Below are positions 17-56,026 of a DNA stretch of 64,000 nucleotides, in pieces. Numbering within the stretch: the stretch's first letter is position 1; each line of letters begins with the position of its first letter. Location of the stretch: sequence record OP557969.1; one strand, given 5' to 3'. The notes under the pieces are model-generated. The model was not told the origin of the DNA. It did no database searches and saw only the letters and a list, made by a program, of their open reading frames with translations. The translations under genes and the position numbers were made by a program.

Positions 17-265
17 ATGTATGTTAATGATAATAATTATAGTGTTAAATTATCATTCGATATTGTGTTGGATAAATTAACATTTACGGAATACACTACC
101 AATAAAACTTCATTTTTACACAAGTATAATAGAAAGGTATATAATCATATTTCTAGTTATTTAAATGAAGAATATTACTTTCAACAATCTACAATAGAAA
201 AAGTATTATTCAGTACTGAAGAATTAAAAGAATTATATTATTGGTATGAGAAATTTACATCTTGA
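17..265 (+). CDS. hypothetical protein, EExxFQxS[TL][IV]-motif family (may be 5'-truncated)
   Basis: Contains EEYYFQQSTIE. Confidence 0.7.
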   Translation: MYVNDNNYSVKLSFDIVLDKLTFTEYTTNKTSFLHKYNRKVYNHISSYLNEEYYFQQSTIEKVLFSTEELKELYYWYEKFTS

Positions 266-320
266 CATTATGGTGGTTTCATCTTACAATACAAGATAAT
301 GATGCGTTGAGGACAAATTC

Positions 321-731
321 ATGAGTATAGATTTACACAATGAACTACAATATTTTTTTGATTTGGATATATCACGTTTGAACAGACATGTCAATCATAT
401 ATCCAGAACTATATGGTGGTCTGATGAGGCTGATGAACCAAGGATTCAGATTTGTGATAATTTGTCAGTTTTAAGATTGTATGTTCTTGATACCGAAATG
501 AATATTATGATAACATACGTACCACCCACAAACAAACTTCTAATCAACACACTAAACCCAGATACAGTACTGAAAATTTTTGATTTGGATACGATACAGT
601 CAAGCGAAACACTATTCCAACGTTCATTGGTTGATGATCTAGGGGGTATTTCTTTTGACGATATATTAAAATTGAAGAAGATGTATAATGAATTATTAGA
701 GATTAAAAATACCGTTCTAATGGGGATTTAA
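321..731 (+). CDS. hypothetical protein, EExxFQxS-motif family
   Basis: SETLFQRSLVDDLGGISFDDI; RBS-like GAGG upstream. Confidence 0.85.
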   Translation: MSIDLHNELQYFFDLDISRLNRHVNHISRTIWWSDEADEPRIQICDNLSVLRLYVLDTEMNIMITYVPPTNKLLINTLNPDTVLKIFDLDTIQSSETLFQRSLVDDLGGISFDDILKLKKMYNELLEIKNTVLMGI

Positions 732-732
732 T

Positions 733-1137
733 ATGGTAAGTTTATTAGATATTGATAATACTAGTCTGGTTCTGGTGAAAAAAGGATTAATTCCAAATTC
801 TAACAAGATTGATTATGCTGTTATTGAAACAAATATTGGGAATATCTGGTACGACTCTGAAAGAGACATTGTGTTTAGCTGTGTAGATAGTGATCGTTCT
901 GAGTGCTGTAGGGTTGGGCATGACGGACAATTTATTTTCGAATTTCGTTTCTGGAAAGATTCCAGATTTCACCAGGAGCATGTTTCAATTACAAATGTAA
1001 ATTGTAATGAAGAATCATTCTTCATGGAAAGTACTATTAATGATTTTGGCTCAGTTACTTTTGAGTACTATAAAAAAGTATATAACTTGTACAGAGAAGT
1101 AATTCGAATCATAAGAACCTCTGAGGGTCAAGATTAA
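733..1137 (+). CDS. hypothetical protein, EExxFQxS-motif family
   Basis: NEESFFMESTINDFGSVTFE. Confidence 0.85.
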   Translation: MVSLLDIDNTSLVLVKKGLIPNSNKIDYAVIETNIGNIWYDSERDIVFSCVDSDRSECCRVGHDGQFIFEFRFWKDSRFHQEHVSITNVNCNEESFFMESTINDFGSVTFEYYKKVYNLYREVIRIIRTSEGQD

Positions 1138-1138
1138 T

Positions 1139-1516
1139 ATGACTACTACCATATATAATATTTTAGGTAACTTGAATAAAAACATAGATAATGATTTTGT
1201 TATAGTTGAAAACACTAAAAATATAATTCATCTACCATTGGGTACACCAGATAGGTTAATTTTTAACATATACGCTAACACACTGACATACATACACGAT
1301 GGTATGGTTATCGTTGTGCTTGATATTAAAGAAAATACAATACGATATGCATATGACTTTAACGTTTATTGGTCAAGAACTCATAGTATTGATATTGAGG
1401 AAGATGAACTTTTTCAATTATCGTTAATTGAGAAAAATGTAATAGGAGTTACCGAGATTGGTATTGTTAAAAAAGCTTTGGAATATGCAAATAAAAAAAT
1501 AAATGGCGAACTATGA
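1139..1516 (+). CDS. hypothetical protein, EExxFQxS-motif family
   Basis: EEDELFQLSLIE. Confidence 0.85.
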   Translation: MTTTIYNILGNLNKNIDNDFVIVENTKNIIHLPLGTPDRLIFNIYANTLTYIHDGMVIVVLDIKENTIRYAYDFNVYWSRTHSIDIEEDELFQLSLIEKNVIGVTEIGIVKKALEYANKKINGEL

Positions 1517-1977
1517 TGAACATTGAGGAAATAAAAAATCATTTTGAAATTGCATTGTCTTGTGATTTTGATAGTTGTTATGTTACTGAACCAGAAGATA
1601 TAATTAGAATTTCCACATCGTTTTCAGAAGAATACAATATACTCATTGAGAAATCATATGACAGAACCGAACTCTCATTTTACAATAAGGATTTACGAAC
1701 AACATCATTTATATTATTATATAACACAACATCGGATATAATAGAGATTATAACAAGTAAAACAGGTAAAACAAGTAAAGATGTACATTATGAGACTATA
1801 CCAAATGTAAGTTATTGTTCAACAGAAGAAGGATACTTCCAGGAATCACTTATTAAAAATTTATCAGTTAGCTATTCTGATTTAAGCATTATAGTCAATT
1901 ATGTGGAAAAGTTAAATGATTTCGTTCTATCGATGTTTGATATCACTGAGCAAAAACCAAAGGAAATCAAATGTTAA
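1513..1977 (+). CDS. hypothetical protein, EExxFQxS-motif family
   Basis: TEEGYFQESLIK; ATGA overlap with previous gene. Confidence 0.85.
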   Translation: MMNIEEIKNHFEIALSCDFDSCYVTEPEDIIRISTSFSEEYNILIEKSYDRTELSFYNKDLRTTSFILLYNTTSDIIEIITSKTGKTSKDVHYETIPNVSYCSTEEGYFQESLIKNLSVSYSDLSIIVNYVEKLNDFVLSMFDITEQKPKEIKC

Positions 1978-3083: not shown

Positions 3084-4964
3084 ATGAAACCTATCCGAGT
3101 ACTATCTCTTTTTAATGGAATGAGTGTAGGATACATGGCATTAAAAGATGCTGGTATCCCTGTTGAAAAATATTATTCATCCGAAATTGACAAATTTGCT
3201 ATAGCTGAATCCCAAGCTAACTTCCCCGATATAATCCAATTGGGTGATGTAACTAAGTGGAGAGAATGGGATATTGAATGGGACAAGATAGATCTACTGA
3301 TGGGTGGTTTTCCATGCTTCCCAGCAGGAACTATGATAATGACAAATAAAGGTCATAAAGATATAAAAGATATAAAAATTGGTGATATGGTTCTTACACA
3401 CACTGGACAGTACCAAAAAGTATTGAGTACTGGTGTTAAAAAGGCTCCCACTCGTATTATTACGGGTCAAGGTCACCTTCCAATTGAATGTACCGATAAT
3501 CATCCATTTTGGAGTAGGGAACGTCTAGCCAATAAATGGAATAATCAACGCCGAAGATATGATTCTGTGTTTTCTGAACCGCAATGGGTAAATGCTATAG
3601 ATCTTACTAAACAAAGTTATATTTGTAATGTTAAAAATATTACACATAATACTGTAAGTGATAAAGATGAAAAATATTGGTATTTTGTTGGTCGTTTTAT
3701 GGGTGATGGATGTGCTAGTGTATCTAATAACAAATACAGTATTACTATTGTAGATTCATTAGATAAAGTTGATGAATTGAAAAAATGCTTTGATGATTTT
3801 GGATACAAATACACATTAGCTATTAAAGATAATCATGTAAGATGTGATATATATAGCAAAAAGCTTTATGATGAATTAATATGTATTGGGCATAAATCAC
3901 AAAACAAATGTTTACCACCTGAAATATTCAATGAAACTATCAATAACAAAGAAGCATTTATTAAAGGATACATGGATGCAGATGGTTGTGAGGATAAACA
4001 CAATAAAAAATACAAATTTACCACCACAAGTTATAAAATAGTTCTTGGTATGCAACAGTTAATCTTAGATACTTATCAAAGTCATTGTACTATTAGCCAA
4101 ACTGTTCCAAAAACAAAAAAATATATAAAAAATAAGTTGGTTAATCAGCTTCCGTATTGGAATGTTCATTTTAGCTATAATAAAATTAAAAGAGATGATG
4201 TAATATATGATGAAATTTATATATGGAATCGTGGTGTAAAAAGTAATGTACCAACCGGAGAATGGAAAACCGTTTACAATATTGAAGTTGCAGTAGATAA
4301 CACATATACAGCGAACAATATTGTAGTTCATAACTGCCAAGCGTGGTCAGTTGCAGGTAAACAGGGTGGAATAAATGATCCTCGTGGTATGTTATTCCAT
4401 ACAATGGTTGATATTTACCAGCACATAAAAAGTCTCAATCCAGACTTGAAAGTACTGTTCGAGAATGTTAAAATGAAAGAAGATTTCAAGCAATACATTA
4501 ATAGTGTTCTTGAGATGACACCAGTACTGATAAATTCCCAGCATTATACGCCTCACTTCAGGCAGCGATATTACTGGTACAGTACTGATAAACTTTTTAT
4601 ACCACCTGCATTATCCAATGCACCTAAACTTCAAGATATTATTGAAGATGGTTGGTACACTGACAGAACCGCTTCGTACTGTATAGATGCTAACTATTTT
4701 AAGGGTGGTGATTGTAACCAGTACTTTAATAAATCAAGAAGACAAATTGTTTTCAAAGAACCTGATATCGATAGGGATTTCCTTCTTGAACATGGTAAGC
4801 GAAATGTGGACTATCGTCATTTAACAGTACAAGAGTGTTGCATGTTGCAAGGAATTGATGTAAACTACTTCAAAGTTAGTAGTTCAACACAAGCATACAA
4901 AATGCTTGGGAATGGATGGACTATGCCAGTTATATCACACTTACTACGAGATATATTCTTTTGA
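3084..4964 (+). CDS. DNA (cytosine-5)-methyltransferase, intein-containing
   Basis: Motif I LSLFNG, SEIDK, GDV, motif IV GGFP|CQ split by an intein, ENV, RQRYYW, LTVQECCMLQG, YKMLGNGW. Confidence 0.93.
   Translation: MKPIRVLSLFNGMSVGYMALKDAGIPVEKYYSSEIDKFAIAESQANFPDIIQLGDVTKWREWDIEWDKIDLLMGGFPCFPAGTMIMTNKGHKDIKDIKIGDMVLTHTGQYQKVLSTGVKKAPTRIITGQGHLPIECTDNHPFWSRERLANKWNNQRRRYDSVFSEPQWVNAIDLTKQSYICNVKNITHNTVSDKDEKYWYFVGRFMGDGCASVSNNKYSITIVDSLDKVDELKKCFDDFGYKYTLAIKDNHVRCDIYSKKLYDELICIGHKSQNKCLPPEIFNETINNKEAFIKGYMDADGCEDKHNKKYKFTTTSYKIVLGMQQLILDTYQSHCTISQTVPKTKKYIKNKLVNQLPYWNVHFSYNKIKRDDVIYDEIYIWNRGVKSNVPTGEWKTVYNIEVAVDNTYTANNIVVHNCQAWSVAGKQGGINDPRGMLFHTMVDIYQHIKSLNPDLKVLFENVKMKEDFKQYINSVLEMTPVLINSQHYTPHFRQRYYWYSTDKLFIPPALSNAPKLQDIIEDGWYTDRTASYCIDANYFKGGDCNQYFNKSRRQIVFKEPDIDRDFLLEHGKRNVDYRHLTVQECCMLQGIDVNYFKVSSSTQAYKMLGNGWTMPVISHLLRDIFF
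3315..4334 (+). mobile_element. intein (340 aa) with LAGLIDADG homing endonuclease domain
   Basis: Starts CFPAGT, block B IECTDNHPFW, LAGLIDADG-like YFVGRFMGDG and FIKGYMDADG, ends VYNIEV...IVVHN followed by Cys+1. Confidence 0.93.
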
Positions 4965-5489: not shown

Positions 5490-6005
5490 ATGACAGTTCC
5501 GTATGTTAAAATTATTAACAATATCCTTGATTTATGGGAAGATGTTATTACCGGTAAAAAGAATCCAATACCAGTACACGTACTAACTGGAAGACTACAA
5601 TTCAGAATGTCTAACAAAACTGAAACGTTTAATAATCATGATATTTGTATTACATTAAAAACACCTGTTAGTATTGTAATTAAAAAAAATAAAGATGATG
5701 AATTGTCATTATCTATTGGTCGTGATAAAATTATTTTAAGTAATTTGTCTGAAGAAGAATTCTTTCAAAGAAGTACTATCATCGACATGAAAGATTTCAC
5801 ATATGAATCATTAGTAGAACTCAATACACGTTTTGATGATATTCAGGAACGATTGCGACCAATACTCCGTAGAGAAGAAGAAGCCTGGATTGAAAGTATG
5901 AAGAAGATGCAAGAAATGTTAAAAGAAAATATTAACAATCTTGGTAAAACAACAATGGAAATTGGTAAAACTTTAAAACTCAACTTTTCAAAGGATCGTA
6001 AATGA
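5490..6005 (+). CDS. hypothetical protein, EExxFQxS-motif family
   Basis: SEEEFFQRSTIIDM; start moved to after AGGTG. Confidence 0.85.
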   Translation: MTVPYVKIINNILDLWEDVITGKKNPIPVHVLTGRLQFRMSNKTETFNNHDICITLKTPVSIVIKKNKDDELSLSIGRDKIILSNLSEEEFFQRSTIIDMKDFTYESLVELNTRFDDIQERLRPILRREEEAWIESMKKMQEMLKENINNLGKTTMEIGKTLKLNFSKDRK

Positions 6006-6454
6006 AAATCGATGAACTGATTTATATTTTAGGTAACTTGCACAAAATATTGTTACATCGCAACGAGATGAATAAACTAGGGTATAATATAACTAATTTA
6101 AATGAAACATCATTTAAATATAACTCAATCACTGGTGGAAATTATAATATTGTGTATTGTCATGAAACTGACCCTGACTGCTATCAACTTACGTTATACT
6201 TTTATCCAACAAACCCTACCATTGTTCAAGACATATCATCAATATCACTTGACCCAGATGGTGAAATGAGTATAGAATATAGCTATGATTCTAAAAAAGA
6301 ATGTTACGTTGAAGATATGAAAAATATGTTTAACGATGCATATGTGTTCCAGCTAAGTACTGTACATGATGTTGGAAGTACTAATGGGCAATTTTGGAAT
6401 ACATGCTATTATCATATGATTGGAATTTGTAAATTACTAAAAGGCGATGATTAA
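6002..6454 (+). CDS. hypothetical protein, EExxFQxS-motif family
   Basis: NDAYVFQLSTVHD. Confidence 0.8.
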   Translation: MKIDELIYILGNLHKILLHRNEMNKLGYNITNLNETSFKYNSITGGNYNIVYCHETDPDCYQLTLYFYPTNPTIVQDISSISLDPDGEMSIEYSYDSKKECYVEDMKNMFNDAYVFQLSTVHDVGSTNGQFWNTCYYHMIGICKLLKGDD

Positions 6455-6837
6455 TGAAATACAGCATTGAAGTACATTACACTACTGGTGATACTGAAAA
6501 TCAATATAACATAGTTAAGACCATTGATGTTCAATGGGATACTAAAGAGGAAGCAGTTGCTGCTTTACAGTGTCTAAAAGAGCATTGGGTGTTTTATATG
6601 AAGCAAGATAATTGCCATACAAAAGAACGCGAAACTATCGTTAAAAATGCTAAACAAAAAGAGTGGTTTGACCCAATTTCACCAGAATATTCATTTTTGG
6701 TTAAAGTTGGTGGCGTGACAGTACCCTTACGAACACCGTGGAACGGCTACTTTGAAACTCTTCATAATGCACGAGTTGTCGCTGTTGACAATCCTGAACA
6801 AATCGATTTTGATTCATTGGACTGGAAAAAATTATGA
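6454..6837 (+). CDS. hypothetical protein
   Basis: Coupled start/stop overlaps on both sides. Confidence 0.8.
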   Translation: MKYSIEVHYTTGDTENQYNIVKTIDVQWDTKEEAVAALQCLKEHWVFYMKQDNCHTKERETIVKNAKQKEWFDPISPEYSFLVKVGGVTVPLRTPWNGYFETLHNARVVAVDNPEQIDFDSLDWKKL

Positions 6838-7277
6838 CAGTACTGCACCAATTGAAGAAGGTTAAGCATCCAGTTGTATATGAGGACTGGAAACGTCAGA
6901 AGCTGATGGGTGACTTTTATTACCCAAAATCTAAAGTTCTTGCGAATTCAAGATGTACATATATCAAACATAACGATAAAGATACAGTATTTGTTGAAAT
7001 GGGGTTCAATCCATCAAATACAATGTTCAGTACTAACCAAACATTTTACAAATTTCATATCCAAAAAGATGTATTTTCTATTAAAATTATAAAACATTTA
7101 GTTGAAGATCTGGTATACAGTGAAGAAAGAGTTCCTTTATCATTAGTGGATATTCCTTATAATAATTTAGAGGAAATGTACTTCCAACAGTTGACAGTAC
7201 AAGAAAACTTTGGTATGATAGGACTTCAAGAGTTAGAGATGATTAAGCAAATTCGTGATATCTACTTTAAGGGGTAA
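6834..7277 (+). CDS. hypothetical protein, EExxFQxS-motif family
   Basis: LEEMYFQQLTVQE. Confidence 0.8.
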   Translation: MTVLHQLKKVKHPVVYEDWKRQKLMGDFYYPKSKVLANSRCTYIKHNDKDTVFVEMGFNPSNTMFSTNQTFYKFHIQKDVFSIKIIKHLVEDLVYSEERVPLSLVDIPYNNLEEMYFQQLTVQENFGMIGLQELEMIKQIRDIYFKG

Positions 7278-11553: not shown

Positions 11554-11946
11554 ATGACTGAATCAGAACTACATGAAATGATAGATTTCATTTATGAAAT
11601 GATACAAGATAAAAATATCATTAATACAATTACTTCTGGTCCAAGACAAATTGGTAATCAAATGACATATTCTTTATCTTTATGGATAAACCAGAACTAC
11701 AAAGTTGATTGTTTGTATTTCCGTCCTGATATTGATGCTTATTATTTTGTCAATCATGATGCATTAATGAAACCACATAAGCGTCCAGTTGATGATAACT
11801 TTGTGACACACCCATTTTACCTTGCTGAATCAGAGGAAGATGAGTTTCAAAAGAACACAACGTTAAGCCCAGGTGAAATTTGCATCCCTTACACACTAAA
11901 AGATAAAATGATTTACATCACAGAAGTTATGAAAACATGCTGGTAA
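11554..11946 (+). CDS. hypothetical protein, EExxFQxS-motif family (divergent)
   Basis: SEEDEFQKNTTL. Confidence 0.75.
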   Translation: MTESELHEMIDFIYEMIQDKNIINTITSGPRQIGNQMTYSLSLWINQNYKVDCLYFRPDIDAYYFVNHDALMKPHKRPVDDNFVTHPFYLAESEEDEFQKNTTLSPGEICIPYTLKDKMIYITEVMKTCW

Positions 11947-12564: not shown

Positions 12565-13053
12565 ATGCCGATTCGTGGTGTACCAGACCCAATACGTGAA
12601 ATTCTTAAGCACATTCGCATTGAAACACTAGAAGTTAACATGCGTCGTTATAATATATATTACTTTAAAACTTCCGAAATGAGTTCTGTACAGATTGTCA
12701 TTGGTACATCTATTAAGATTACTCGTGTACTTGATGGCAGTACTGACTTTGTTGAATACAACGTACTTACTAATAAAGTAACACATACATATAAATGGAG
12801 TGGATATAAAACTATTAAATATGAGTTTGACTTAGCTAGAACCGAAGAAGAACGATTCATGTTGAGTACTATAAATCCAGAAAACTATCCTGACATTGAT
12901 ACATTTTTGCTAATTTTAAAATTGTATAATAAAGCAAATGAGAAAGCTAAAGAGTACAATAGAATCATGTATGAACGCAAAAAAGAACGTGTACAAAAAA
13001 GTTATGATCTGTATGATAACCCATACGTGAAATATAGTAAGGGAAAGAAATGA
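12565..13053 (+). CDS. hypothetical protein, EExxFQxS-motif family
   Basis: TEEERFMLSTIN; GAGGA RBS. Confidence 0.8.
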   Translation: MPIRGVPDPIREILKHIRIETLEVNMRRYNIYYFKTSEMSSVQIVIGTSIKITRVLDGSTDFVEYNVLTNKVTHTYKWSGYKTIKYEFDLARTEEERFMLSTINPENYPDIDTFLLILKLYNKANEKAKEYNRIMYERKKERVQKSYDLYDNPYVKYSKGKK

Positions 13054-13454
13054 ATAATGAAGTTCAAATTATCATTACTCCACCTATACAAAGTCTGGAT
13101 GTAACCATTAGCGATTTTTTGGAAAAATACTATGAATGGTTTAATGAAGATTCAGTCATTTATAACCATTCATTAACGGATGGTTTTGTTGAGCTTATTG
13201 AATTAAATTCCAAATCGCTATATTTCTGTGTCGAATACAATGATTATATGACCGATGAAGCATATCGCTTTCGTTGTACATTATATCCTAACCATTTTTC
13301 TATTGGTTATAAAGACTATCAGTACTGTACCACTAACTATAGTGAAGAGGAAGAATTTCAGTACAATTTACTTTATCCAGATTTGGATTATACTATCGCA
13401 GTACTGTTGTCTAAAATCATGGATTTTTATAAAGGTAAATGTAATGCAACCTAA
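13050..13454 (+). CDS. hypothetical protein, EExxFQxS-motif family
   Basis: SEEEEFQYNLLY. Confidence 0.8.
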   Translation: MNNEVQIIITPPIQSLDVTISDFLEKYYEWFNEDSVIYNHSLTDGFVELIELNSKSLYFCVEYNDYMTDEAYRFRCTLYPNHFSIGYKDYQYCTTNYSEEEEFQYNLLYPDLDYTIAVLLSKIMDFYKGKCNAT

Positions 13455-13629
13455 AACATTCGATGAGTGGTATCAAATACATTACAATATAAATGCAGCA
13501 GATATATACTATTTTAAGCTTGAATTGTATATATCATTGCGTGACCCAGTTGAGTACTATAACAACATTATCAATTGTGATGATTTTGGTACATATTTTA
13601 GCATTGCAGTTATGGATAAAATAAGATGA
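13444..13629 (+). CDS. small hypothetical protein (MQPKTFDEW...)
   Basis: Start moved to the ATG at 13444 after AAGGT; loosely resembles the MTHEEW family. Confidence 0.6.
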   Translation: MQPKTFDEWYQIHYNINAADIYYFKLELYISLRDPVEYYNNIINCDDFGTYFSIAVMDKIR

Positions 13630-13808
13630 CACACAAAGAATGGTTAGATGAACTAAAGTTCAAACATGATCATTTTGGTCTTGGTATACGCCAGGGTCAT
13701 TATGATGTGTTAAAAGATAAACAACTTTTCAAATCATTTGTACTTGATGAGGATAGTAATCACTGGTACATCTATGAGCTTGCGGTTAGAGACAAAAAAA
13801 TTGACTAG
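13626..13808 (+). CDS. MTH[EK]EW microprotein
   Basis: Paralog of 14354..14524 (G.R.GHYD.L.DKQ.F...VLDED.N.W.IYELA.R). Confidence 0.85.
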   Translation: MTHKEWLDELKFKHDHFGLGIRQGHYDVLKDKQLFKSFVLDEDSNHWYIYELAVRDKKID

Positions 13809-13853: not shown

Positions 13854-14357
13854 ATGCTCATTACGCATGTACCGGAAAGTATTACTGAGATTTTAAGTAA
13901 AATTAATGTTAATGAATTTGAACGAACAGTTCGAAAACAAGGTACTTATCACTATAAGCACAAAGATGGTGAACATCAAATAAGCTTAGATCAGAATTAT
14001 CAAACTCTAACAATTAAAATGGTTACTCGCTGGAATTTTATTCGTAAAGATACTATTATCTGTGATTTTGGTAAAAGACTACTTAGAAAATGTTTCTCTG
14101 AAACAAATGGTATCTATCCAAACCCGAATAGAATTTTCACATATAAATACATCACAGATGAAGATGTACATTTTCAAGAGAGTTTGGTATGTGATAATAA
14201 GTACTTTCCCGCATTTTCAGATAATTTGAAGTTAAAAGAACTATATAACTATTTCTTAAACGACAATATTCAGTGGGATGAAGAATTAAAACAACGACAG
14301 ATAGAACGTGAAAAGAAAAAAGTCTGGACTGGTTCACATTGGATGCAACGTAAATGA
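13854..14357 (+). CDS. hypothetical protein, EExxFQxS-motif family
   Basis: DEDVHFQESLVCD; GGAG RBS. Confidence 0.85.
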   Translation: MLITHVPESITEILSKINVNEFERTVRKQGTYHYKHKDGEHQISLDQNYQTLTIKMVTRWNFIRKDTIICDFGKRLLRKCFSETNGIYPNPNRIFTYKYITDEDVHFQESLVCDNKYFPAFSDNLKLKELYNYFLNDNIQWDEELKQRQIEREKKKVWTGSHWMQRK

Positions 14358-14524
14358 CACATGAAGAATGGATGTCTATTATGAAAGAACGATATGATCT
14401 GTTTGGGAATGGATTTCGTGATGGTCATTACGATATTTTACGAGACAAACAACAGTTCGATTTATATGTACTAGATGAGGATGGAAATCGATGGTTCATA
14501 TATGAGCTTGCATTTAGGGAATAG
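14354..14524 (+). CDS. MTH[EK]EW microprotein (56 aa, not in ORF track)
   Basis: Translated by hand: MTHEEWMSIMKERYDLFGNGFRDGHYDILRDKQQF...YELAFRE. Confidence 0.85.
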   Translation: MTHEEWMSIMKERYDLFGNGFRDGHYDILRDKQQFDLYVLDEDGNRWFIYELAFRE

Positions 14525-15380: not shown

Positions 15381-15505
<125 letters not shown>

Positions 15506-15512
15506 CAAAAGA

Positions 15513-15586
15513 CGGGGTATAGCACAATTGGATAGTGCAAGAGAATTCTAATCTCTAGGTTGGGGGTTCAAGTCCCTCTACCTCGG
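15513..15586 (+). tRNA. tRNA-Arg(TCT)
   Basis: CGGGGTA/TACCTCG acceptor, AGAGA-ATTCTAA-TCTCT arm, TTCAAGT T-loop. Confidence 0.88.
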
Positions 15587-15610
15587 CCTACTTTAATTAA
15601 AGGTTAAACC

Positions 15611-15775
15611 ATGACGCATGAAGAATGGATGAATGACATTAATTTTAGATATGCAGGTATCGGTAACTGGAGAAAGTATCATTGGGAAATCATATCAGAC
15701 CCAGCAGAATACGATAAACTTATGAATCATGAAGTGTATCCGTGGTTCTTTATTGAAATAATGGTACGATTATGA
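15611..15775 (+). CDS. MTHEEW microprotein (54 aa, not in ORF track)
   Basis: MTHEEWMNDINFRYAGIGNWRKYHWE...; AAGGT RBS. Confidence 0.85.
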   Translation: MTHEEWMNDINFRYAGIGNWRKYHWEIISDPAEYDKLMNHEVYPWFFIEIMVRL

Positions 15776-15932
15776 CACATGAAGAATGGATGAATGACAT
15801 TAATTTTAGATATTCGGGTATCGGTAAATGGCTAAAGTATCATTGGGAATTCATTTCAGAGCCACATCTGTATGATAAACTTATCAACGATTCTGCATAT
15901 AAAATGTACTTAATTGAACTACTGGTACGAAT

Positions 15933-15936
<4 letters not shown>
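15772..15936 (+). CDS. MTHEEW microprotein (54 aa), tandem duplicate
   Basis: MTHEEWMNDINFRYSGIGKWLKYHWE...; ATGA overlap. Confidence 0.85.
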
Positions 15937-16105
<169 letters not shown>

Positions 16106-16108
16106 AAG

Positions 16109-16553
<445 letters not shown>

Positions 16554-16581
16554 GTATCTTAATAACAGAAGGTATATTGAA

Positions 16582-16821
16582 ATGAGTAAGTATTTTGTGA
16601 GTTATAGTTATAATGTATCACGAAAGATTCCACGTGGTGACGGAATGGGATGGTCTTATGATGCATATACTTTAAATGAGTCATGTATCATCGAATTAAA
16701 AGAAAAAGACCTTGACATTTTAAAAATCAAACAATATATTCTTGATGTTGAATTGGCACATCGTACTGATATCTATCCAGATGTAAATAACATCAGCATC
16801 TTAGTACTAACCAAAGTATAA
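16582..16821 (+). CDS. hypothetical protein
   Basis: Start moved to after promoter 16522 and GAAGGT. Confidence 0.7.
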   Translation: MSKYFVSYSYNVSRKIPRGDGMGWSYDAYTLNESCIIELKEKDLDILKIKQYILDVELAHRTDIYPDVNNISILVLTKV

Positions 16822-16827
16822 GATAAA

Positions 16828-16861
<34 letters not shown>

Positions 16862-17208
16862 GAATTCCACAATCAGACGTATATGGTGTAAGTTACGTCG
16901 ATGCAATCCAGAACAAGATCTCTGGTACTCTAGGAAGTGGTTAATGTTAACCTAGACGGGTTTGATAATTGGACGATAGGCAATTATTACTTGACTAGCA
17001 GGTTTAAACTAGAGGTGACTATCCTTCACCAAACTGGAAAACCGGATGGACTTTTATTTAAAAGGGTAAGGCGTGGAAATATGTTTACAGTAGTTGCTTT
17101 TAGTAGCCTGTACGCCCCACGTCAAGGTAGCCGAAAGGCAAGTTAAAACGGGTGGTTATAAAGCTGAATTAACAGCGGCGTTTAAAAGCGTCACCATCCA
17201 TTTTTTTT
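16862..17208 (+). ncRNA. candidate structured ncRNA (about 345 nt)
   Basis: Starts at promoter 16833-16861, many hairpins including GCC-GAAA-GGC, ends in T8. Confidence 0.55.
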
Positions 17209-17224
17209 AATTAAAGTTGGTGAT

Positions 17225-17863
<639 letters not shown>

Positions 17864-17936
17864 CTTTTTAATTTAAAAGTACTTTACTGTAGTGTTTAGT
17901 ACCGTATAATGTAAACAAAAGGATAAAATAAAACTC

Positions 17937-18461
<525 letters not shown>

Positions 18462-18483
18462 TTAAAAAATCAGTACTTTATTA

Positions 18484-18697
<214 letters not shown>

Positions 18698-18700
18698 TCA

Positions 18701-18868
<168 letters not shown>

Positions 18869-18889
18869 TTCACATGATATAGGGTACAC

Positions 18890-19147
<258 letters not shown>

Positions 19148-19159
19148 ATAAAAAGAACG

Positions 19160-19427
<268 letters not shown>

Positions 19428-19436
19428 TAATTGACG

Positions 19437-19487
<51 letters not shown>

Positions 19488-19504
19488 TACAACCGACAAT
19501 GACT

Positions 19505-19571
<67 letters not shown>

Positions 19572-19746
19572 GAAGAAACTGCTAAACAGCTTGAAGAACT
19601 TTGTAGTGCTGCACCGATGCCGACTCTTGGCTTAATCAAGTTGATGCGTCGAAATAAGAAAAATTTAAAATAATACAGTAAGATGGCCTCCCCTCCATAT
19701 CATGAGAGTATAGAGACTTGTTGGTTATCTTACTTTTAAACAAACT

Positions 19747-19820
19747 GCCTCAATAGCAAAATTGGTAATGCACACGTTTTGTAAGCGTGAGATTTTTCCG
19801 TTCGAGTCGGAATTGGGGCA
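19747..19820 (+). tRNA. tRNA-Thr(TGT)
   Basis: GCCTCAA/TTGGGGC acceptor, CACGT-TTTGTAA-GCGTG arm, TTCGAGT T-loop; CCA not encoded. Confidence 0.9.
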
Positions 19821-30514: not shown

Positions 30515-30519
30515 ATTGT

Positions 30520-30547: not shown

Positions 30548-30549
30548 TT

Positions 30550-30577: not shown

Positions 30578-30579
30578 AA

Positions 30580-39896: not shown

Positions 39897-40469
39897 ATGA
39901 ATCGTAAAGGTCGTTTTAAGGTATCAAAGAAGAACAAAAGTTCTAGATTTAAGCCTATAGTTTTAACCGTTAAAGCCAAAGCGGAATTAACTGCACTTAG
40001 TAAAAAGATTATTTCATCTAAGATCAAAATATCATATATAAATTCAGTAAAATATCATAATGTCAAACCACGAGATCAACTTATTTCACTCATATTTAAA
40101 CGTAATGATTTTGAGATATCAGTGGATGATTATAGAGCCTATAATGCTGGTTTCATTAATGTTATTTGTACTACAGAACTAACTGAATTAGAACATTTGT
40201 CATGTATAGTAAATCTCGATAAAGGTGTAGTGAAATACCACTTTGTACATTTTACTAATATTAATGATGGAAAGGGTGTACAATCCAGAACTATAGTACC
40301 TACATGTGATGTGACTAAATTATCAAAGCTCAATGACGAAGAATATTTTCAAGAAAGTACTGTAACTGAATATATAGATGAAATTATAGCAACTTACAAA
40401 GAATGTATATGGGTTTTAAATGCAATGAAGCCTAAATTATGTTTGATGAATATTGTACGTGATTTATGA
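39897..40469 (+). CDS. hypothetical protein, EExxFQxS-motif family, basic N-terminus
   Basis: NDEEYFQESTVTE. Confidence 0.85.
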   Translation: MNRKGRFKVSKKNKSSRFKPIVLTVKAKAELTALSKKIISSKIKISYINSVKYHNVKPRDQLISLIFKRNDFEISVDDYRAYNAGFINVICTTELTELEHLSCIVNLDKGVVKYHFVHFTNINDGKGVQSRTIVPTCDVTKLSKLNDEEYFQESTVTEYIDEIIATYKECIWVLNAMKPKLCLMNIVRDL

Positions 40470-41039: not shown

Positions 41040-41423
41040 ATGGTTGATAAATGGAATAAGAAAGAACCATCTCATGATGTGGATATTTCTGACCTAGATA
41101 ATGAACATAAACACAAGTACCTAGATTCACTAGGTCTACTAAAGCCGGACCAAAGTATTGCACATGATCGTCCTTCACGTGAAAAAGCATTCAGTCTGGA
41201 ATCTCTAGGTCATGAGCTAAATCGTGTGTTTGAAGAACACCCAATCTATGTACGTGATATTATTGAGAAACTTAAAGTAACTCCTAAAGAGCACTTTAAA
41301 GCAACTGTACACTCTGCATTCAATGCATTACATGAAGCACTTAAGAAAACTCACAACCTTCGTAAGATTCATGATGATATTGTAAATGCAATTGAAAGTG
41401 AAAAACATAAATTCAAGAAGTAA
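41040..41423 (+). CDS. charged protein, possible late/internal virion protein
   Basis: AGGAG RBS, late promoter; shares YLDSLGLL...EL..VF...P..V..I...L...PKE with the next gene. Confidence 0.8.
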   Translation: MVDKWNKKEPSHDVDISDLDNEHKHKYLDSLGLLKPDQSIAHDRPSREKAFSLESLGHELNRVFEEHPIYVRDIIEKLKVTPKEHFKATVHSAFNALHEALKKTHNLRKIHDDIVNAIESEKHKFKK

Positions 41424-41488
41424 TAGAAAAGAGGTTGACTTCGGTCAGCCTTTTTTATATATTATAAATATAGTCATAGAGAAAAAAC

Positions 41489-42760
41489 ATGAAATCTATG
41501 GAGAGAAATCAAATGCCAAGTAATTTTACTGATAAAAATGGTGGTAACATGGCAGGTCACTCGGATAAATGGAGTGAACGCAACCGCCGCCCAAATAGTT
41601 ACCAAGCAGGTCAAGGTTCCCGTGGCTCCAGAAACCAAGGAACTGGTCTAGCTGGTAAAGCAAATGCTGAACCAGGTGAAGTTAAAAGTACTGAGAACAT
41701 GACTGAGCTAGAAAAGCTACGTTATGTTAATTCATTAGGACTTCTTAATGCTACACAAAAACAACGTCTAGCTGATATGGAACGCGAAGAAAAAGAAAAA
41801 ACGACTGCTAAAGAAGAACCAAAACAGGAAGCACCGAAGCCGTCTAATCCTGTCAAAGAACTGTCTGATAAGTTAGGTAAGATCTTTGCAAATAAACCCC
41901 AACTTATTCAAGGTATTGTCAAAGAATTGCAATCTGTACCTAAAGAAGAATTAAAAGTCAAAGCACAAGCTGTTCTGGATGCAATGAAAGGAAATACCAG
42001 CACTGAGCCAACTGAAGTGTTCAGCACTATTATGCGTGCACTGGAAGGTAAACAACAAGGTGAAGAACGTGGTGATGAAGTAAGTCTTGAACGTGTTCTT
42101 AAAACATTTGATAGTATTGGGAAAGAAGACCGTGTTAATGCACAACAGGTTAAAAATGTACTAGCAAAATTGGAAAACCGTCTAGAAGGTAAAGATGATA
42201 AGATTAAATTGGTATCTGATGCAGTTGACAATGCACTTAAATCTTATGTACAAGGTGAAAAGAGTCGTTTTGTGACCGCGATGGATGTAGCATTCAATAC
42301 AATGAAAAAGTATGAAGCTGACCATGGTGAGAAGGTTACACCTGATGGTTATCTGATGCGTGATGATGAAGAAGGTGCAGTAGAACAGAATGATGTTCAT
42401 TCTGACGAAGATATTGATGATATGGAAGCTGAACTGTCACAAGATCGCCAAATGACTGAAAAATCACACAACGAACTAAAGAAATTAATGCAGTGGGTCG
42501 CTGATGTTGGAGAAAAAGCGGGTGCTGATAAGAAAAGTATAAACCGAAATCTTAGTTGGATTAAAGATAAAGTAGGTAACAACGCTCGTAAACTACAAAA
42601 AGCATGGACTGATGTAGTGAATGGTGCAGTAGATATTGACGTTGAATCTGGTGAAGCATATGATTATGCATTGACTACACTTGATGATTCTTTTCGTGAC
42701 TACGAAAAAGGAAACGTAACTCCTTGGGAAAAGGACATAATGAGCAAATACGGCAAATGA
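41489..42760 (+). CDS. large hydrophilic protein, possible late/internal virion protein
   Basis: Late promoter at 41463; very charged; start may be 41513. Confidence 0.85.
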   Translation: MKSMERNQMPSNFTDKNGGNMAGHSDKWSERNRRPNSYQAGQGSRGSRNQGTGLAGKANAEPGEVKSTENMTELEKLRYVNSLGLLNATQKQRLADMEREEKEKTTAKEEPKQEAPKPSNPVKELSDKLGKIFANKPQLIQGIVKELQSVPKEELKVKAQAVLDAMKGNTSTEPTEVFSTIMRALEGKQQGEERGDEVSLERVLKTFDSIGKEDRVNAQQVKNVLAKLENRLEGKDDKIKLVSDAVDNALKSYVQGEKSRFVTAMDVAFNTMKKYEADHGEKVTPDGYLMRDDEEGAVEQNDVHSDEDIDDMEAELSQDRQMTEKSHNELKKLMQWVADVGEKAGADKKSINRNLSWIKDKVGNNARKLQKAWTDVVNGAVDIDVESGEAYDYALTTLDDSFRDYEKGNVTPWEKDIMSKYGK

Positions 42761-43817: not shown

Positions 43818-44156
43818 ATGGAACAATATTTTGAATTAATTAATAAAGTGTCATTCTATGTAGTGTCATTGACGTGGGTTTATTTCATGTTTTGCTACAT
43901 TATTGCATTCTTCCGATATACTACTTTATATGAACGTATCTATTATGATGCACCAATTTCATTCTTGGTGTTCTGTGCATGTACGTGGGGAATATTAGAA
44001 GTACTGATATGTGGATATAGAACTGATGAATTAAATCTGGTATCGGTATTGACTGGGTTATCACTTGGTGTTATGATATCTTTCTTTCCAGTATGGTTGT
44101 TCTTTGAACTGATCCATCGCATTGATGTATGGCGTTCTAATATCCCTGAAAAATAA
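43818..44156 (+). CDS. three-TM membrane protein family, array A
   Basis: TM1-FFRY, C-terminal WRSNIPEK. Confidence 0.8.
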   Translation: MEQYFELINKVSFYVVSLTWVYFMFCYIIAFFRYTTLYERIYYDAPISFLVFCACTWGILEVLICGYRTDELNLVSVLTGLSLGVMISFFPVWLFFELIHRIDVWRSNIPEK

Positions 44157-44159
44157 GGA

Positions 44160-44507
44160 TTGATAATGATTTTCTACACTAATTCGTTTGCTTATGCTAT
44201 TGCATCAATCTACATTGTGTACTTCTTATTTGGTGGAGTACTGTACTTCTTTAAGTACAAAACATTGTTTAACAGAATGTATCCAAATCACCCAATTGTA
44301 GTAGTACTTTTGATAATTTCTGTTGCTCATATCATTGTAGAAACAATAATGGGTATCAGTGCAGTACATTACAGTCTAGGTACTATTGTAATTATTACTA
44401 TGATCATAGCATACATTTTAGTAATGGGTTCTGGTTTATTTGGGAATGTAGCAATGAAAATGTATAATCGAATCAAAACATTACGTGATAATCTACCGGA
44501 GCGTTGA
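44160..44507 (+). CDS. three-TM membrane protein family, array A
   Basis: TM1-YFFKY, C-terminal LRDNLPER. Confidence 0.8.
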   Translation: MIMIFYTNSFAYAIASIYIVYFLFGGVLYFFKYKTLFNRMYPNHPIVVVLLIISVAHIIVETIMGISAVHYSLGTIVIITMIIAYILVMGSGLFGNVAMKMYNRIKTLRDNLPER

Positions 44508-44853
44508 GTTGTATAATTTAAATTTAATATCATATATCATAACAACAATGTTTACTTTCTATGCCTTTGTTGGTATAATCCTACTGTACTTTAAATTTTA
44601 TAAAGTCTTTGACCGTTTATTTCCATCATTGGAACATGAATTCTTATTGGTGATGTACATCTGTTTAACGTGTATGTCTACATTTTTCACTGTATTTGAT
44701 GGTATCATTGGTATTAAAGCTGAATATCCAAATGGAAGTACACTTGTTGCCTTTATACTGGTAGGATTCTTCGGTACTTATATCACTTTCATTTCAACAT
44801 GGTCTGTGGTTGATTATCTCATTAGATTACGAAATAAAATGCCAAATCGATAG
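44485..44853 (+). CDS. three-TM membrane protein family, array A
   Basis: TM1-YFKFY, C-terminal LRNKMPNR; start uncertain. Confidence 0.75.
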   Translation: MIIYRSVELYNLNLISYIITTMFTFYAFVGIILLYFKFYKVFDRLFPSLEHEFLLVMYICLTCMSTFFTVFDGIIGIKAEYPNGSTLVAFILVGFFGTYITFISTWSVVDYLIRLRNKMPNR

Positions 44854-52552: not shown

Positions 52553-52894
52553 ATGCTTGAGTTTTTTAATTCAAATACAATGCTTGGTATTACTTTAATT
52601 TACATGTTTGTATTTTTGTTTTATCATTCAATTGTAATTAGCCTGTGGTATTTTAAAAGGAAAGTTGTTTTTAAATTGTATTCGTATGATAATGTATTCT
52701 TAGTTGTATATAGTATTGTACAAGGTGGGTTTATTTTATTTGGTATTATGACTTATTTCATTTATCGATTGGAAATTGATAATACACCACACATTACACA
52801 ATATGTTGTGTTTTCTGGACTAATCGTGTGGTTGTTGACATGTGTCGTGTACTTTATTATTAAAGCTCGTGACAAAATTAAAGGGGAATTCTAA
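52553..52894 (+). CDS. three-TM membrane protein family, array B
   Basis: LWYFKRK; C-terminal ARDKIKGEF. Confidence 0.85.
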   Translation: MLEFFNSNTMLGITLIYMFVFLFYHSIVISLWYFKRKVVFKLYSYDNVFLVVYSIVQGGFILFGIMTYFIYRLEIDNTPHITQYVVFSGLIVWLLTCVVYFIIKARDKIKGEF

Positions 52895-53232
52895 TGTTAA
52901 CATTTTTTCAGTCAGATACAATGATTAGTATTACGTTGATTTATCTGTTTGGATTTTTCTTTTATCATGCACTAGTTGTAGTACTATGGTATTTTAAAAA
53001 GAATATAGTTTTCAAACTGTATCCTAAAGGAAACGTTTCATTACTTCTTTTCACTATTATCCAAGGTATCTTTGCAATTTTTGGTATTACTGCACATTTA
53101 ATTTATTGTGCTAATCCACATTTGAACTCAATATCACAATACATTGTATTTTTTGGATTACTAATTTGGGTACTAATATACGTAACTAATCTCATCATTA
53201 ATGGTAGAGCTAAAATTCACGGAGACTTTTAA
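52894..53232 (+). CDS. three-TM membrane protein family, array B
   Basis: Close paralog of the previous gene. Confidence 0.85.
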   Translation: MLTFFQSDTMISITLIYLFGFFFYHALVVVLWYFKKNIVFKLYPKGNVSLLLFTIIQGIFAIFGITAHLIYCANPHLNSISQYIVFFGLLIWVLIYVTNLIINGRAKIHGDF

Positions 53233-53579
53233 TGTTTGAATCTTATCTTGACTTTTTAAGGAATAGTCCAGTAGCACACTCACTTGCTGGGATTGTTCTA
53301 TCAGGCTATATCACATTTTGGGTAGTTATGTTTCTAGGATGGTATTTTAAACGACAATTCTATAAGCGTAACGGTGAAGATTTTATGAATTCTGCTATTA
53401 ATCAATCGTTGTTTGCATCAACATTGATAGCATCAATTGTAGCAACACTCACTGGTGCAGTTCTATCAGCATTCGCCGCAGTTTACGGCACACTTGGAGT
53501 GGTATGTTTATCTTTAATATTGATCATTAAACTTTGTTGTGTTATGATTGAACTTCGAAATAAGATACCGGAGGAATGA
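53232..53579 (+). CDS. three-TM membrane protein family, array B
   Basis: GWYFKRQ; LRNKIPEE. Confidence 0.85.
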   Translation: MFESYLDFLRNSPVAHSLAGIVLSGYITFWVVMFLGWYFKRQFYKRNGEDFMNSAINQSLFASTLIASIVATLTGAVLSAFAAVYGTLGVVCLSLILIIKLCCVMIELRNKIPEE

Positions 53580-53914
53580 TGGAGTATTTTATTGATTTAC
53601 TGCCGTGGTATATGAAAGTGAGTATTTTATACTATATTATTAGTACTGGATTCTACTTCCTGATGTGGTTTTTTAAACGACCAATTTCAGTGTACATTGC
53701 TGATAACATGCTGCAATTAAAATTACAAGCATGGTTTTATATGGCGATGTTTATGCCTATTATTCACTATTCAATGATTAGTCTAGGTTTACGTTCTAAT
53801 GGTGAACCAATTGTATTAGTATTCTATTGGACTTCAACTCTAGTATATGTCGGTTTGTTGTTATACCCAATCGTTCATATATTACGTGCTAAAGTTCCTG
53901 ATGCGAGGTACTAA
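53576..53914 (+). CDS. three-TM membrane protein family, array B
   Basis: MWFFKRP; LRAKVPD. Confidence 0.85.
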   Translation: MMEYFIDLLPWYMKVSILYYIISTGFYFLMWFFKRPISVYIADNMLQLKLQAWFYMAMFMPIIHYSMISLGLRSNGEPIVLVFYWTSTLVYVGLLLYPIVHILRAKVPDARY

Positions 53915-54228
53915 TGGATATAGTAACATTGATTTACACGTTGTATTCATTCTATTTTATTATGTGTTGGATTGGATTTTTATTTGTACTGAAGACGTTT
54001 GATTATGTTGAAAGACAGATAAAAGAATTTTGTATTCCTTTTATTGGGTCAACCATAATTAGTATTACTTGTTTGTATTATTTGGTATGTGATCCACCAG
54101 ATAACACTGCAATGATTGACTTTATGTTAGCACCAACTACTGTTATTTTTTTATGTAGTCTGCTGCCACCTATTAGTCGTGGGTTAGCAGAATTTAGACG
54201 CAAACAAAAGCTTAAACGAGGGATGTAA
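53914..54228 (+). CDS. three-TM membrane protein family, array B
   Basis: Three TMs, basic C-terminus. Confidence 0.8.
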   Translation: MDIVTLIYTLYSFYFIMCWIGFLFVLKTFDYVERQIKEFCIPFIGSTIISITCLYYLVCDPPDNTAMIDFMLAPTTVIFLCSLLPPISRGLAEFRRKQKLKRGM

Positions 54229-54596
54229 TGGAAATCACACTTATTATATTAACTTCTATGTTGTTTATTAGTACAGTTGTTATTATTGGCAAGTTCTTCT
54301 GTGTATCCTTCTTGGAAACCGTATATGATGAAATTGCAGATGATTATGAATTAGAAGCAGGATTTTTTATTACGTATTGGGTTAGTTTATTACTGCTTAT
54401 CACAGTATGGGTTTTGCATATATTCCAATGGGGTATGGTTGGTGATGATCCATTACTGGGAATTATTTGTGCGACATTTGGGCTACTGACTGGTGCTGCC
54501 CACAATCTGATAGTAATTGTGCAAACTATAAAATGCGTATTAGTTCCACATTTTCAGAGAATGCACCAAAACATTAAACGCCGCAAACGAGGTTAA
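54228..54596 (+). CDS. three-TM membrane protein family, array B
   Basis: IGKFF; basic C-terminus. Confidence 0.8.
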   Translation: MEITLIILTSMLFISTVVIIGKFFCVSFLETVYDEIADDYELEAGFFITYWVSLLLLITVWVLHIFQWGMVGDDPLLGIICATFGLLTGAAHNLIVIVQTIKCVLVPHFQRMHQNIKRRKRG

Positions 54597-54597
54597 T

Positions 54598-54960
54598 ATG
54601 AACGGGATAGAGTTATCTGTGTTTGGTCAATCACTAATAATTATTAATACTTTCTTTTTCTCACTTAATTCATTTATGTGTATTGGGAAGTATTTTCATA
54701 AACGACCATTATCAAATATATATGATGTAATTCAAACGAGATATAGTCCAGCATATACTATAGTTATTAGCAGTTTCAATTTTGGTTTTGTTTTATTAGT
54801 AATTGGAATGTTAACATCAACGTTGAATATCATCACATTCGGTCTTATGATATGTTCATTGGCATTAACATTAGTTATATGTTGTTTAGTACTACACCTT
54901 ATGGTTCTATTATATTTAAAGATATATGAAATTCACCACCGCTTAGGTACGAGGAAATGA
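54598..54960 (+). CDS. three-TM membrane protein family, array B
   Basis: IGKYFHKRP; IHHRL. Confidence 0.8.
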   Translation: MNGIELSVFGQSLIIINTFFFSLNSFMCIGKYFHKRPLSNIYDVIQTRYSPAYTIVISSFNFGFVLLVIGMLTSTLNIITFGLMICSLALTLVICCLVLHLMVLLYLKIYEIHHRLGTRK

Positions 54961-54961
54961 T

Positions 54962-55333
54962 ATGAGTTATCGTGAAGTATTTTCTATAATTTCAATTATT
55001 ATGTTCAGTGCTGGAACATTGATTTGGTTACTATACTTTTTCTGTATTAATCCAGTGTATAATATGTTATGCAATATTAAATCAAGTACTGGCTATATGA
55101 CTTTTATGATCTTTATGGGATATTATTGTCTAAGCATTTTAGGTGTTTTTTTTGTTGTTATATTTGATATAGGGCCAAACAAGGACGGTCTACAAATGTA
55201 TGAGTTAATAACTATGTTTGGGTGTATGATACCAACCGCACTAATGTTTGTAGCTATTGGTTCTGGATGTATAAAGTTATACAATTATTTAAAATCCATT
55301 CATCATTACATTCATAATAAACGTATGTCCTAA
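54962..55333 (+). CDS. three-TM membrane protein family, array B
   Basis: LLYFFC; IHHYI. Confidence 0.8.
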   Translation: MSYREVFSIISIIMFSAGTLIWLLYFFCINPVYNMLCNIKSSTGYMTFMIFMGYYCLSILGVFFVVIFDIGPNKDGLQMYELITMFGCMIPTALMFVAIGSGCIKLYNYLKSIHHYIHNKRMS

Positions 55334-55378
55334 TAAAAATCCAGTACTGAATAGTACTGGATTATTTGAGGTAGAGCA

Positions 55379-56026
55379 ATGAAATCGAAATTAGGTTTGT
55401 TTTACAGTAATTATTTTGTTAAGCAGCGTAAATTTATAAAGAAATACTTCTCCACAGAGAAGTCCGGTCCTATTATTTTTAAAAGATCAAAATATCATAC
55501 TTACTTAGCTGGTGTTAAACAGTCTAAAAAATTTATTGCTCTATTAAATAAAAATAAAGTGAAAGCTTCTTATGTTGAAACCAGAAAGAATTCCCCTATA
55601 ACTCCTAGTGATTTTATTGAGTACGGGTGTTTTTATATTGAGAATAATGGTAACACCTATTTTATGGATATTGATTGTAATACATCGAATCTTTTTAACA
55701 TTGTAATAAAACCATCAAAACAATATAATATTTATGGTGATGCTATTATCAAATTGATCAAAAACAAAGATTGGTTTGATTTTGAAATAAATGTTTTAGA
55801 TGAAAATTTTGATGAAGTACCCATTAACCCTGAAATTTGTGATATTCTAAATAGTTTAAAAGGTAGTAGCTACAATATAACATCTGATTTAATGTTTCAG
55901 TACTCTTTAATACATAAAGATATTGAAGATTATATTGTGTGTGCTAAAATCTTGAATTATCTGTATGATGAATTTAAAAAGAGTTCTAAAATCACAGCAT
56001 TCACCCTTTATAATATTTCTGTATAA
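55379..56026 (+). CDS. hypothetical protein, EExxFQxS-motif family (divergent), basic N-terminus
   Basis: TSDLMFQYSLIHKD. Confidence 0.75.
   Translation: MKSKLGLFYSNYFVKQRKFIKKYFSTEKSGPIIFKRSKYHTYLAGVKQSKKFIALLNKNKVKASYVETRKNSPITPSDFIEYGCFYIENNGNTYFMDIDCNTSNLFNIVIKPSKQYNIYGDAIIKLIKNKDWFDFEINVLDENFDEVPINPEICDILNSLKGSSYNITSDLMFQYSLIHKDIEDYIVCAKILNYLYDEFKKSSKITAFTLYNISV

Follow-up and report, generated by a model that had tools for sequence, protein, structure and literature searches.

A hyper-expanded family of small, divergent proteins with a shared C-terminal signature in the Escherichia jumbo phage ph0011

Expanded sets of small paralogous proteins are known from jumbo phages. In phage G, an expansion of about 35 zinc-ribbon copies was called unprecedented in a 2021 comparative survey (PMC7824862), and nearly 10 % of the products of Klebsiella phage RaK2 were reported to be paralogues (PMC3622015). 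Here we describe a family of small proteins that share a 13-residue signature near the C-terminus and are encoded in a stretch of 64,000 nucleotides (nt), the window hereafter, which is identical in sequence to the final 64 kb of Escherichia phage ph0011 (OP557969.1), an Asteriusvirus jumbo myovirus with a genome of 348,217 bp. Coordinates below are those of the window (OP557969.1 record coordinate minus 284,217) unless record positions are named. Like the phage G and RaK2 paralogues, the family consists of many tandem copies of a small domain in one jumbo phage genome; however, more copies were present in ph0011 (61), and both the domain and the signature differ. The remark on RaK2 paralogues probably covers the family, since RaK2 has members, and neither the motif nor the family is described in either of the two papers.

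Poxvirus ankyrin-repeat/PRANC proteins also form a large viral paralogue set, in which a variable part is joined to a constant helical part at the C-terminus. However, Pfam searches with 22 members of the ph0011 family showed no ankyrin repeats and no F-box or PRANC match, and the constant part appears from structure prediction to be packed into the same domain, with no separate module; to our knowledge the bacterial host has no Skp1-cullin system. The adaptors SspB (for ClpX) and ClpS (for ClpA) are small proteins too, and the family could in the same way link substrates to a Clp ATPase. The docking peptide of SspB is its extreme C-terminus, placed after a flexible linker, whereas the family motif is internal (median 39.5 residues from the end) and predicted to be folded. 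No sequence match of the family to SspB or ClpS was found. Internal proteins of the T4 type resemble the family as hypervariable small phage proteins with one short signal, but those proteins are part of the virion and have their signal, which is cleaved, at the N-terminus, whereas the family signature lies near the C-terminus, within the predicted fold, and no member is annotated as structural. The reading that we favour, and to which we give about an even chance, is that of a hyper-expanded family of early single-domain proteins in which the signature would be a structural keystone and the variable surfaces would bind host factors during takeover.

First, the number of copies was determined. 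The original prediction, made from the letters of the window, had listed about 23 open reading frames (ORFs) with the motif. The strict pattern F[QM].[SNCL][TLMF][IVL] was found in 20 of the 347 window ORFs of at least 40 amino acids (aa), all 20 being annotated plus-strand genes, and this was a ten-fold enrichment over residue shuffles (mean 1.96, maximum 8). These 20 belonged to the 23 listed ORFs, which are named here by their first positions. Two of the remaining three proved to be degenerate members. ORF 17225 was the next-best match of a hidden Markov model (HMM) of the tail (E 0.003 to 0.019) and is marginal; the strict motif is present in a metagenomic representative whose tail is similar. 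ORF 21248, with the annotated start 21263, has a degenerate motif (tail HMM E 0.005) and was joined by full-length phmmer to 321, 19838, 20247 and 21688. The membership of ORF 11554 was unsupported (tail HMM E 6, hhalign probability 5.9 %), its weak match falling at the expected place of the motif in the protein.

The tail HMM was also run over the 1,844 ORFs of the full record with a cut-off of E <= 0.01. The data showed 61 family ORFs in the ph0011 genome, far above the 23 or so of the window, with none on the minus strand; 56 of them had the strict pattern and 5 did not. Because the HMM was built partly from ph0011 members, the count is informative and the E-values are not. With 582 annotated features in the record, the 61 copies amount to about one tenth of the genes. 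They lie at record positions 0.4 kb, 30.7-57.6 kb (36 copies), 70.3, 111.9, 124.6 and 282.9 kb and then in the window, mostly in two arrays, and the family runs across the ends of the record.

Relatives were sought in sequence and profile databases. A profile search of a library of 1.84 billion protein representatives gave 101 clusters at 50 % identity, all of 62-222 residues and none fused to another domain; the strict motif was present in 92 of the 96 newly found representatives, and the ten representatives that were sampled were metagenomic. At least six members were found in a 41-kb stretch of RaK2, some at syntenic positions, at least four in a 41-kb stretch of Cronobacter phage GAP32, and a syntenic set in Sharanji. 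In tblastn, one member matched Asteriusviruses only, and a degenerate DNA pattern of the motif matched 21 stretches in IMG/VR, of which 18 were on contigs of 345-378 kb. The distribution over isolates, IMG/VR contigs and clusters indicated that the family is confined to the RaK2-like jumbo clade, and with its tandem arrays of paralogues it is a lineage-specific expanded multigene family. No relative was obtained by Pfam, NCBIfam or PDB sequence profile search, and Pfam at E <= 0.01 gave nothing across the 22 members except two chance-level matches. In a PHROG scan of ten members, nine each matched a separate PHROG (E 1e-50 to 1e-125), and 21688 partially matched phrog_17453 (3.5e-10), which it has in common with 19838. 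Cross-matches were mostly within the tail, and every PHROG was of unknown function, in agreement with the original prediction, which did not recognise the family. No description of the motif or the family was found in the literature on Asteriusvirus, RaK2, phAPEC6, PBECO4, Sharanji, CBB or jumbo-phage paralogues.

We analyzed the anatomy of the motif in 96 non-redundant groups (ph0011 and database representatives) anchored on the invariant Phe as position 0. Positions 0, +1, +3, +4 and +5 were partly set by the search pattern, and the remaining positions are independent of it. The Phe was preceded by T (44 groups) or S (18) at -5, E at -4 (81), -3 (75) and -2 (48), and Y (31), L (24) or F (16) at -1. 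It was followed by Q (87) at +1, replaced by M (9) only, by S (90) at +3, with N, C, L or R instead in some members, by T (55) or L (39) at +4, by V (52), I (31) or L (13) at +5 and by D (59) at +7. Farther downstream, L at +11 (30), T at +12 (24) and E at +14 (29) were much rarer, so that the element D-x-x-x-[LI]T[FL]E[DE]I, said in the original prediction to follow often, had been overstated; a general amphipathic helix pattern stood, and periodic hydrophobicity was the sole feature of the sequence downstream of the motif. The substitutions that are allowed (Q to M only, T/L, V/I/L, and Y/L/F at -1) fit packing positions flanked by helix caps. The Phe was at median residue 103 (interquartile range 95-114), with a median of 39.5 residues between it and the C-terminus, and no linker preceded the motif, which lay 30-50 residues away from the end.

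The same residues can be read as functional: the family would then consist of small enzymes or sensors, with the acidic pair, Q, S and D in a catalytic site or a site for a ligand or metal. The conservation of E, E, Q, S and D within 12 residues suits this, as does a predicted fold that has no PDB match and from which no function can be read. However, the rest of the protein is unconserved, M stands in for Q in 9 of the 96 groups, and some members have N, C, L or R in the place of S. It would be unusual for sixty paralogous enzymes to have no further residue conserved. We regard an active or binding site as quite improbable.

Upstream of position -9, no column of the 96 groups carried information. 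In blastp among the N-terminal parts of the members, one pair fell below 1e-3; after phmmer and 6 rounds of jackhmmer, the sequences still fell into dozens of groups plus 63 singletons; and when 13 subfamily profiles were compared pairwise by hhalign, the probability never rose above 2.5 %. The searches thus connected small subfamilies only, and the lack of upstream similarity that had been noted by eye was confirmed. The layout of the sequence was also as first described: about 100 hypervariable aa at the N-terminus come before a constant signature, some 13 aa long, and a helix closes the protein.

Next, codons were examined. The Ser-Thr pair was encoded as AGTACT in 8 of 10 window copies and as TCT ACA and TCT ACT in the other two, exactly as reported before, and as AGTACT in 14 of 23 copies genome-wide. 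Such a palindrome within coding sequence could point to conservation of DNA or RNA, as a promoter, a recombination site or the AGTACT element itself. However, third codon positions varied. Over the 56 strict copies of the genome, the conserved Ser used AGY 30 times and TCN 21 times, and the Phe (TTT/TTC) and Glu codons of the motif were used near their background frequencies. Both CAA and CAG served for Gln, with moderate over-use of CAG (58 % vs 34 %), and ACT was over-used for Thr (64 % vs 35 %). The distance from the motif to the stop codon ranged from 27 to 79 codons. Since synonymous codons vary at conserved positions, and both serine codon blocks are used, selection acts on the protein, as originally proposed; together with the varied distance to the stop, this excludes a DNA or RNA element. 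That explanation was rejected as contradicted by synonymous variation, and its probability is negligible.

Selection was measured by comparing 17 window members with Sharanji, with 21 neighbouring genes as the reference. An intact Sharanji orthologue was present for 16 of the 17 members, at identities of 46 % to 93 %. For the N-terminal parts, the pooled nonsynonymous divergence (dN) was 0.18 and the ratio of nonsynonymous to synonymous divergence (omega) 0.31, and for the tails the values were 0.107 and 0.20; the neighbouring genes gave a dN of 0.085 and an omega of 0.21. These values show that purifying selection maintains every compared copy and that the variable parts evolve faster, about twice as fast as the neighbouring genes.

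The structure of two members, 1971 (47 sequences) and 6002 (136 family sequences), was predicted with AlphaFold2. The model of 6002 had a predicted local distance difference test score (pLDDT) of 89.6 and a predicted template modelling score (pTM) of 0.85, and this pTM indicates one compact domain. It starts with a helix (residues 3-25), which is followed by six strands (within 37-103), two short helices (106-110 and 112-118), a turn (119-128) and a last helix (129-147). Placed after the sheet and before the last helix, the motif takes up the second of the short helices together with the turn. Residues 101-140 make up the block of highest pLDDT in the protein (94-97), and the motif itself reached 96-97. 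The model of 1971 was weak (pLDDT 61.9); its helix at 4-13 was followed by strands (31-101), then by a helix that contains the motif (108-117) and by a last helix (124-144), the same order of elements as in 6002 at lower confidence. Averaged over 166 members, the hydrophobic periodicity of the N-terminal part was helical in its first tenth and that of a strand in the fourth to last tenths, with the weakest signal in the ninth, and strand-forming residues were enriched in the third to tenth tenths, whereas control ORFs of ph0011 gave a flat profile. A common architecture across members that cannot be aligned is likely.

The motif was helical in both models, not a short linear motif in a disordered region, and the signature is predicted to lie inside a compact fold and not in a free docking tail. 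This comes close to the outcome that the original prediction had set against its own view of the motif as a docking tail, namely one full-length fold with the motif in its core, the burial being suggested by the model.

The predicted fold was compared with known structures by Foldseek. The best PDB match of the 6002 model had an E of 0.044 and a template modelling score (TM) of 0.3, and the top PDB matches of the weak 1971 model were p22 and p32 proteins (E 0.07, TM 0.30). Like the family, p32/MAM33 is acidic and has an N-terminal helix, consecutive antiparallel strands and two C-terminal helices. However, its superposition on the 1971 model was insignificant, it was absent from the top 50 matches of the 6002 model, and no Pfam match linked the two. 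Against BFVD, one near-identical entry of 86 residues was found (E 1.5e-9, 85 % identity), and otherwise weak matches to GAP32 and Yersinia phage proteins.

The context of expression was then considered. Sigma-70 promoter matches with at least 11 of 12 consensus bases numbered 31 on the plus strand of the window and none on the minus strand, against a shuffled expectation of 2.6 per strand, and several were located directly upstream of family genes. The same grounds led to the proposal that the syntenic region of phage CBB, which includes a phage sigma factor, is the early region for host takeover (PMC5259590). RNA sequencing of the distant relative PA5oct showed that uncharacterised small genes in arrays are early (PMC7318152). 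The position of the family genes among near-consensus sigma-70 promoters suggests that they are probably expressed early.

None of the 61 copies was among the genes annotated as structural in OP557969.1. Judging from the locus tags, these structural labels were apparently carried over from phAPEC6, which has a virion proteome of 62 proteins (PMC7247149). A divergent set of small proteins with one short common signal would also suit a virion-loading signal for injection like that of the T4 internal proteins; the annotation, by which the reading was rejected, and the sigma-70-type promoters in front of the genes both speak against it, and we consider it extremely improbable.

In the reading that we favour, small acidic proteins (median isoelectric point of the family 4.8) would be made early in infection from host-type promoters, and each would fold into one compact domain, in which an amphipathic helix at the N-terminus is followed by an antiparallel sheet of six strands and by two C-terminal helices. 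The 13-residue signature would be the keystone of this domain. It would form the first C-terminal helix and the following turn, and would supply both core side chains (the aromatic pair, Q/M, T/L and V/I) and capping residues (T/S, the acidic run, S and D). The rest of the protein has diverged past alignment, and a common scaffold displaying many different surfaces is thereby suggested; each surface would probably bind or block a different host or host-defence protein.

Several points weigh against this reading. The models cover two members, with high confidence in only one of them, and we infer the burial of the motif from the model. The N-terminal parts have no profile homology (hhalign at most 2.5 %), and a single shared fold is on this account suggested and not proven. 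In addition, the near-invariant polar residues E, E, Q, S and D exceed what is seen in most purely structural motifs and could reflect a common partner; because these five residues stay fixed, a shared partner is possible.

Such a partner was at the centre of the original prediction, which proposed an adaptor library in which the signature and the last helix dock on one hub and the variable part brings the targets. The concretest candidate hub is the Clp machinery of the phage itself. Across 96 groups that otherwise cannot be aligned, the polar residues are constant and keep a fixed distance to the C-terminus. In addition, ph0011 has Clp genes outside the window, for ClpP (record positions 84302-84997; Pfam E 1.6e-41), for a two-ring Clp/Hsp100 ATPase (170840-173128) and for a weak ClpS-like protein (259249-259794). 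The ATPase is conserved through 121Q, RaK2, GAP32 and PA5oct, and thus co-occurs with the family in RaK2 and GAP32; this co-occurrence says little, because the Clp genes are core genes of the whole clade. However, the motif is the most confident part of a compact predicted domain, it lies 30-50 residues from the end with no disordered linker, and the Q/M and T/L exchanges suit packing more than hydrogen-bonded recognition. What stood of the adaptor proposal was therefore the variable part joined to a constant signature, and the short docking tail found no support. An adaptor library built on one hub seems rather unlikely to us. Still more doubtful is its fuller form, in which the conserved helix would dock on the phage machine of Clp ATPase, ClpS-like protein and ClpP (or on another single hub) and some 60 surfaces would deliver different host proteins, defence proteins among them, for unfolding or destruction early in infection.

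The ClpP of ph0011, together with another protein annotated as a protease, also bears on the idea that the signature is a protease processing site or a degradation signal controlling the lifetime of early proteins, and the acidic-aromatic-Gln character of the motif is in keeping with it. However, the motif is predicted to be helical and within the fold, the residue after the Gln is variable and often bulky, and the annotated protease has no Pfam match. The probability of a processing or degradation signal is very low in our view.

The window has a G+C content of 31-35 % over its full length and is densely packed with small plus-strand genes, almost all annotated as hypothetical; the exception is five large minus-strand genes near the right end. 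The family members in it are all on the plus strand. At the left edge (1-265), ORF 17-265 (82 aa) is the C-terminal part of a member whose gene begins before the window (strict motif at nt 164-202, tail HMM E 1e-8). This gene has one frameshift relative to a 131-aa Sharanji orthologue, with which tblastn gave two pieces in two frames, possibly a sequencing error. Five members follow closely: 321-731 (136 aa, strict motif at nt 600-638, phrog_24941, with a Sharanji orthologue 65 % identical), 733-1137 (134 aa, M for Q, motif at nt 1006-1044, tail HMM E 6e-15), 1139-1516 (125 aa, motif at nt 1397-1435), 1513-1977 (154 aa, motif at nt 1822-1860, with an orthologue just 46 % identical) and 1971-2426 (151 aa, motif at nt 2289-2327), the first AlphaFold2 target. 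Around the cytosine methyltransferase gene at 3084-4964, which encodes 626 aa in ph0011 and 286 aa in Sharanji, DNA alignments of ph0011 with its relatives were interrupted. Beyond it are 5490-6005 (171 aa, motif at nt 5748-5786), with a charged C-terminal extension, the second AlphaFold2 target 6002-6454 (150 aa, motif at nt 6332-6370) and 6834-7277 (147 aa, L for S, motif at nt 7167-7205). The unsupported ORF at 11554-11946 is a possible degenerate member, in register at nt 11830-11868.

Farther to the right, 12565-13053 (162 aa, M for Q, motif at nt 12841-12879) has a basic C-terminal extension, and its N-terminal part is related to that of 13854-14357 (167 aa, motif at nt 14157-14195; blastp 3e-4). 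No orthologue of the latter was found by blastp in the syntenic Sharanji stretch. Between these two lies 13050-13454 (134 aa, motif at nt 13341-13379). A second small paralogue family, of five ORFs of about 55-60 aa, is found at 13626-13808, 14354-14524 and 15611-16097, adjoining a cluster of seven transfer RNA (tRNA) genes at 15419-19820 (Ser, Arg, Ser, Ser, Ile, Asn, Thr). A gene for an HNH homing-type endonuclease (17937-18461) sits between two of the tRNA genes. Family members in this part are 16169-16525 (118 aa, motif at nt 16418-16456), which has a near-consensus sigma-70 promoter upstream at 16110-16137, and the degenerate 17225-17599 (124 aa, R for S, tail HMM E 0.003 and 0.019). Downstream of tRNA-Thr, 19838-20254 (138 aa, C for S, motif at nt 20126-20164, phrog_17453) is syntenic with RaK2 ORF226-228, and is followed by 20247-20612 (121 aa, motif at nt 20502-20540), the degenerate 21263-21679 (138 aa, recognised by full-length phmmer), 21688-22092 (134 aa, motif at nt 21985-22023), with orthologues 56 % identical in PBECO4-type phages, and 22094-22501 (135 aa, M for Q, motif at nt 22379-22417).

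The last three members of the window are dispersed. One is 34807-35322 (171 aa, listed before as ORF 34804; motif at nt 35155-35193, phrog_28118), and the other two have basic N-terminal extensions: 39897-40469 (190 aa, motif at nt 40332-40370, phrog_33518) and 55379-56026 (215 aa, motif at nt 55880-55918, phrog_34359). Additional paralogue sets were seen at 43818-44853, 52553-55333 and 41040-42760, namely a triple of about 112-122 aa, a pair within a run of eight ORFs (104-123 aa) and two mutually related 'structural proteins'. The five minus-strand genes at 56068-62335 are tandem paralogues of 373-449 aa each, annotated in relatives as RCC1-like 'regulator of chromosome condensation' or as DNA condensation proteins, and their number and identity differ strongly among Asteriusviruses. 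Outside the window, about 30 directly adjoining ORFs of 65-85 aa, in which stop and start codons overlap, at record positions 24757-31258, may be another tandem family.

The expansion described here is one of the largest of paralogues seen in a phage. About 10 % of the genes of well-sampled coliphages that are candidates for therapy belong to one family, for which no database or paper description was found, and its predicted fold has no solved relative. If the signature and last helix did dock on a shared hub, the family would be the first known case of an adaptor library in a phage. If the family is a repertoire of binders on a common scaffold, it would offer a wealth of inhibitors against host factors and defences, and it would help to explain the use that jumbo phages make of their extra genome.

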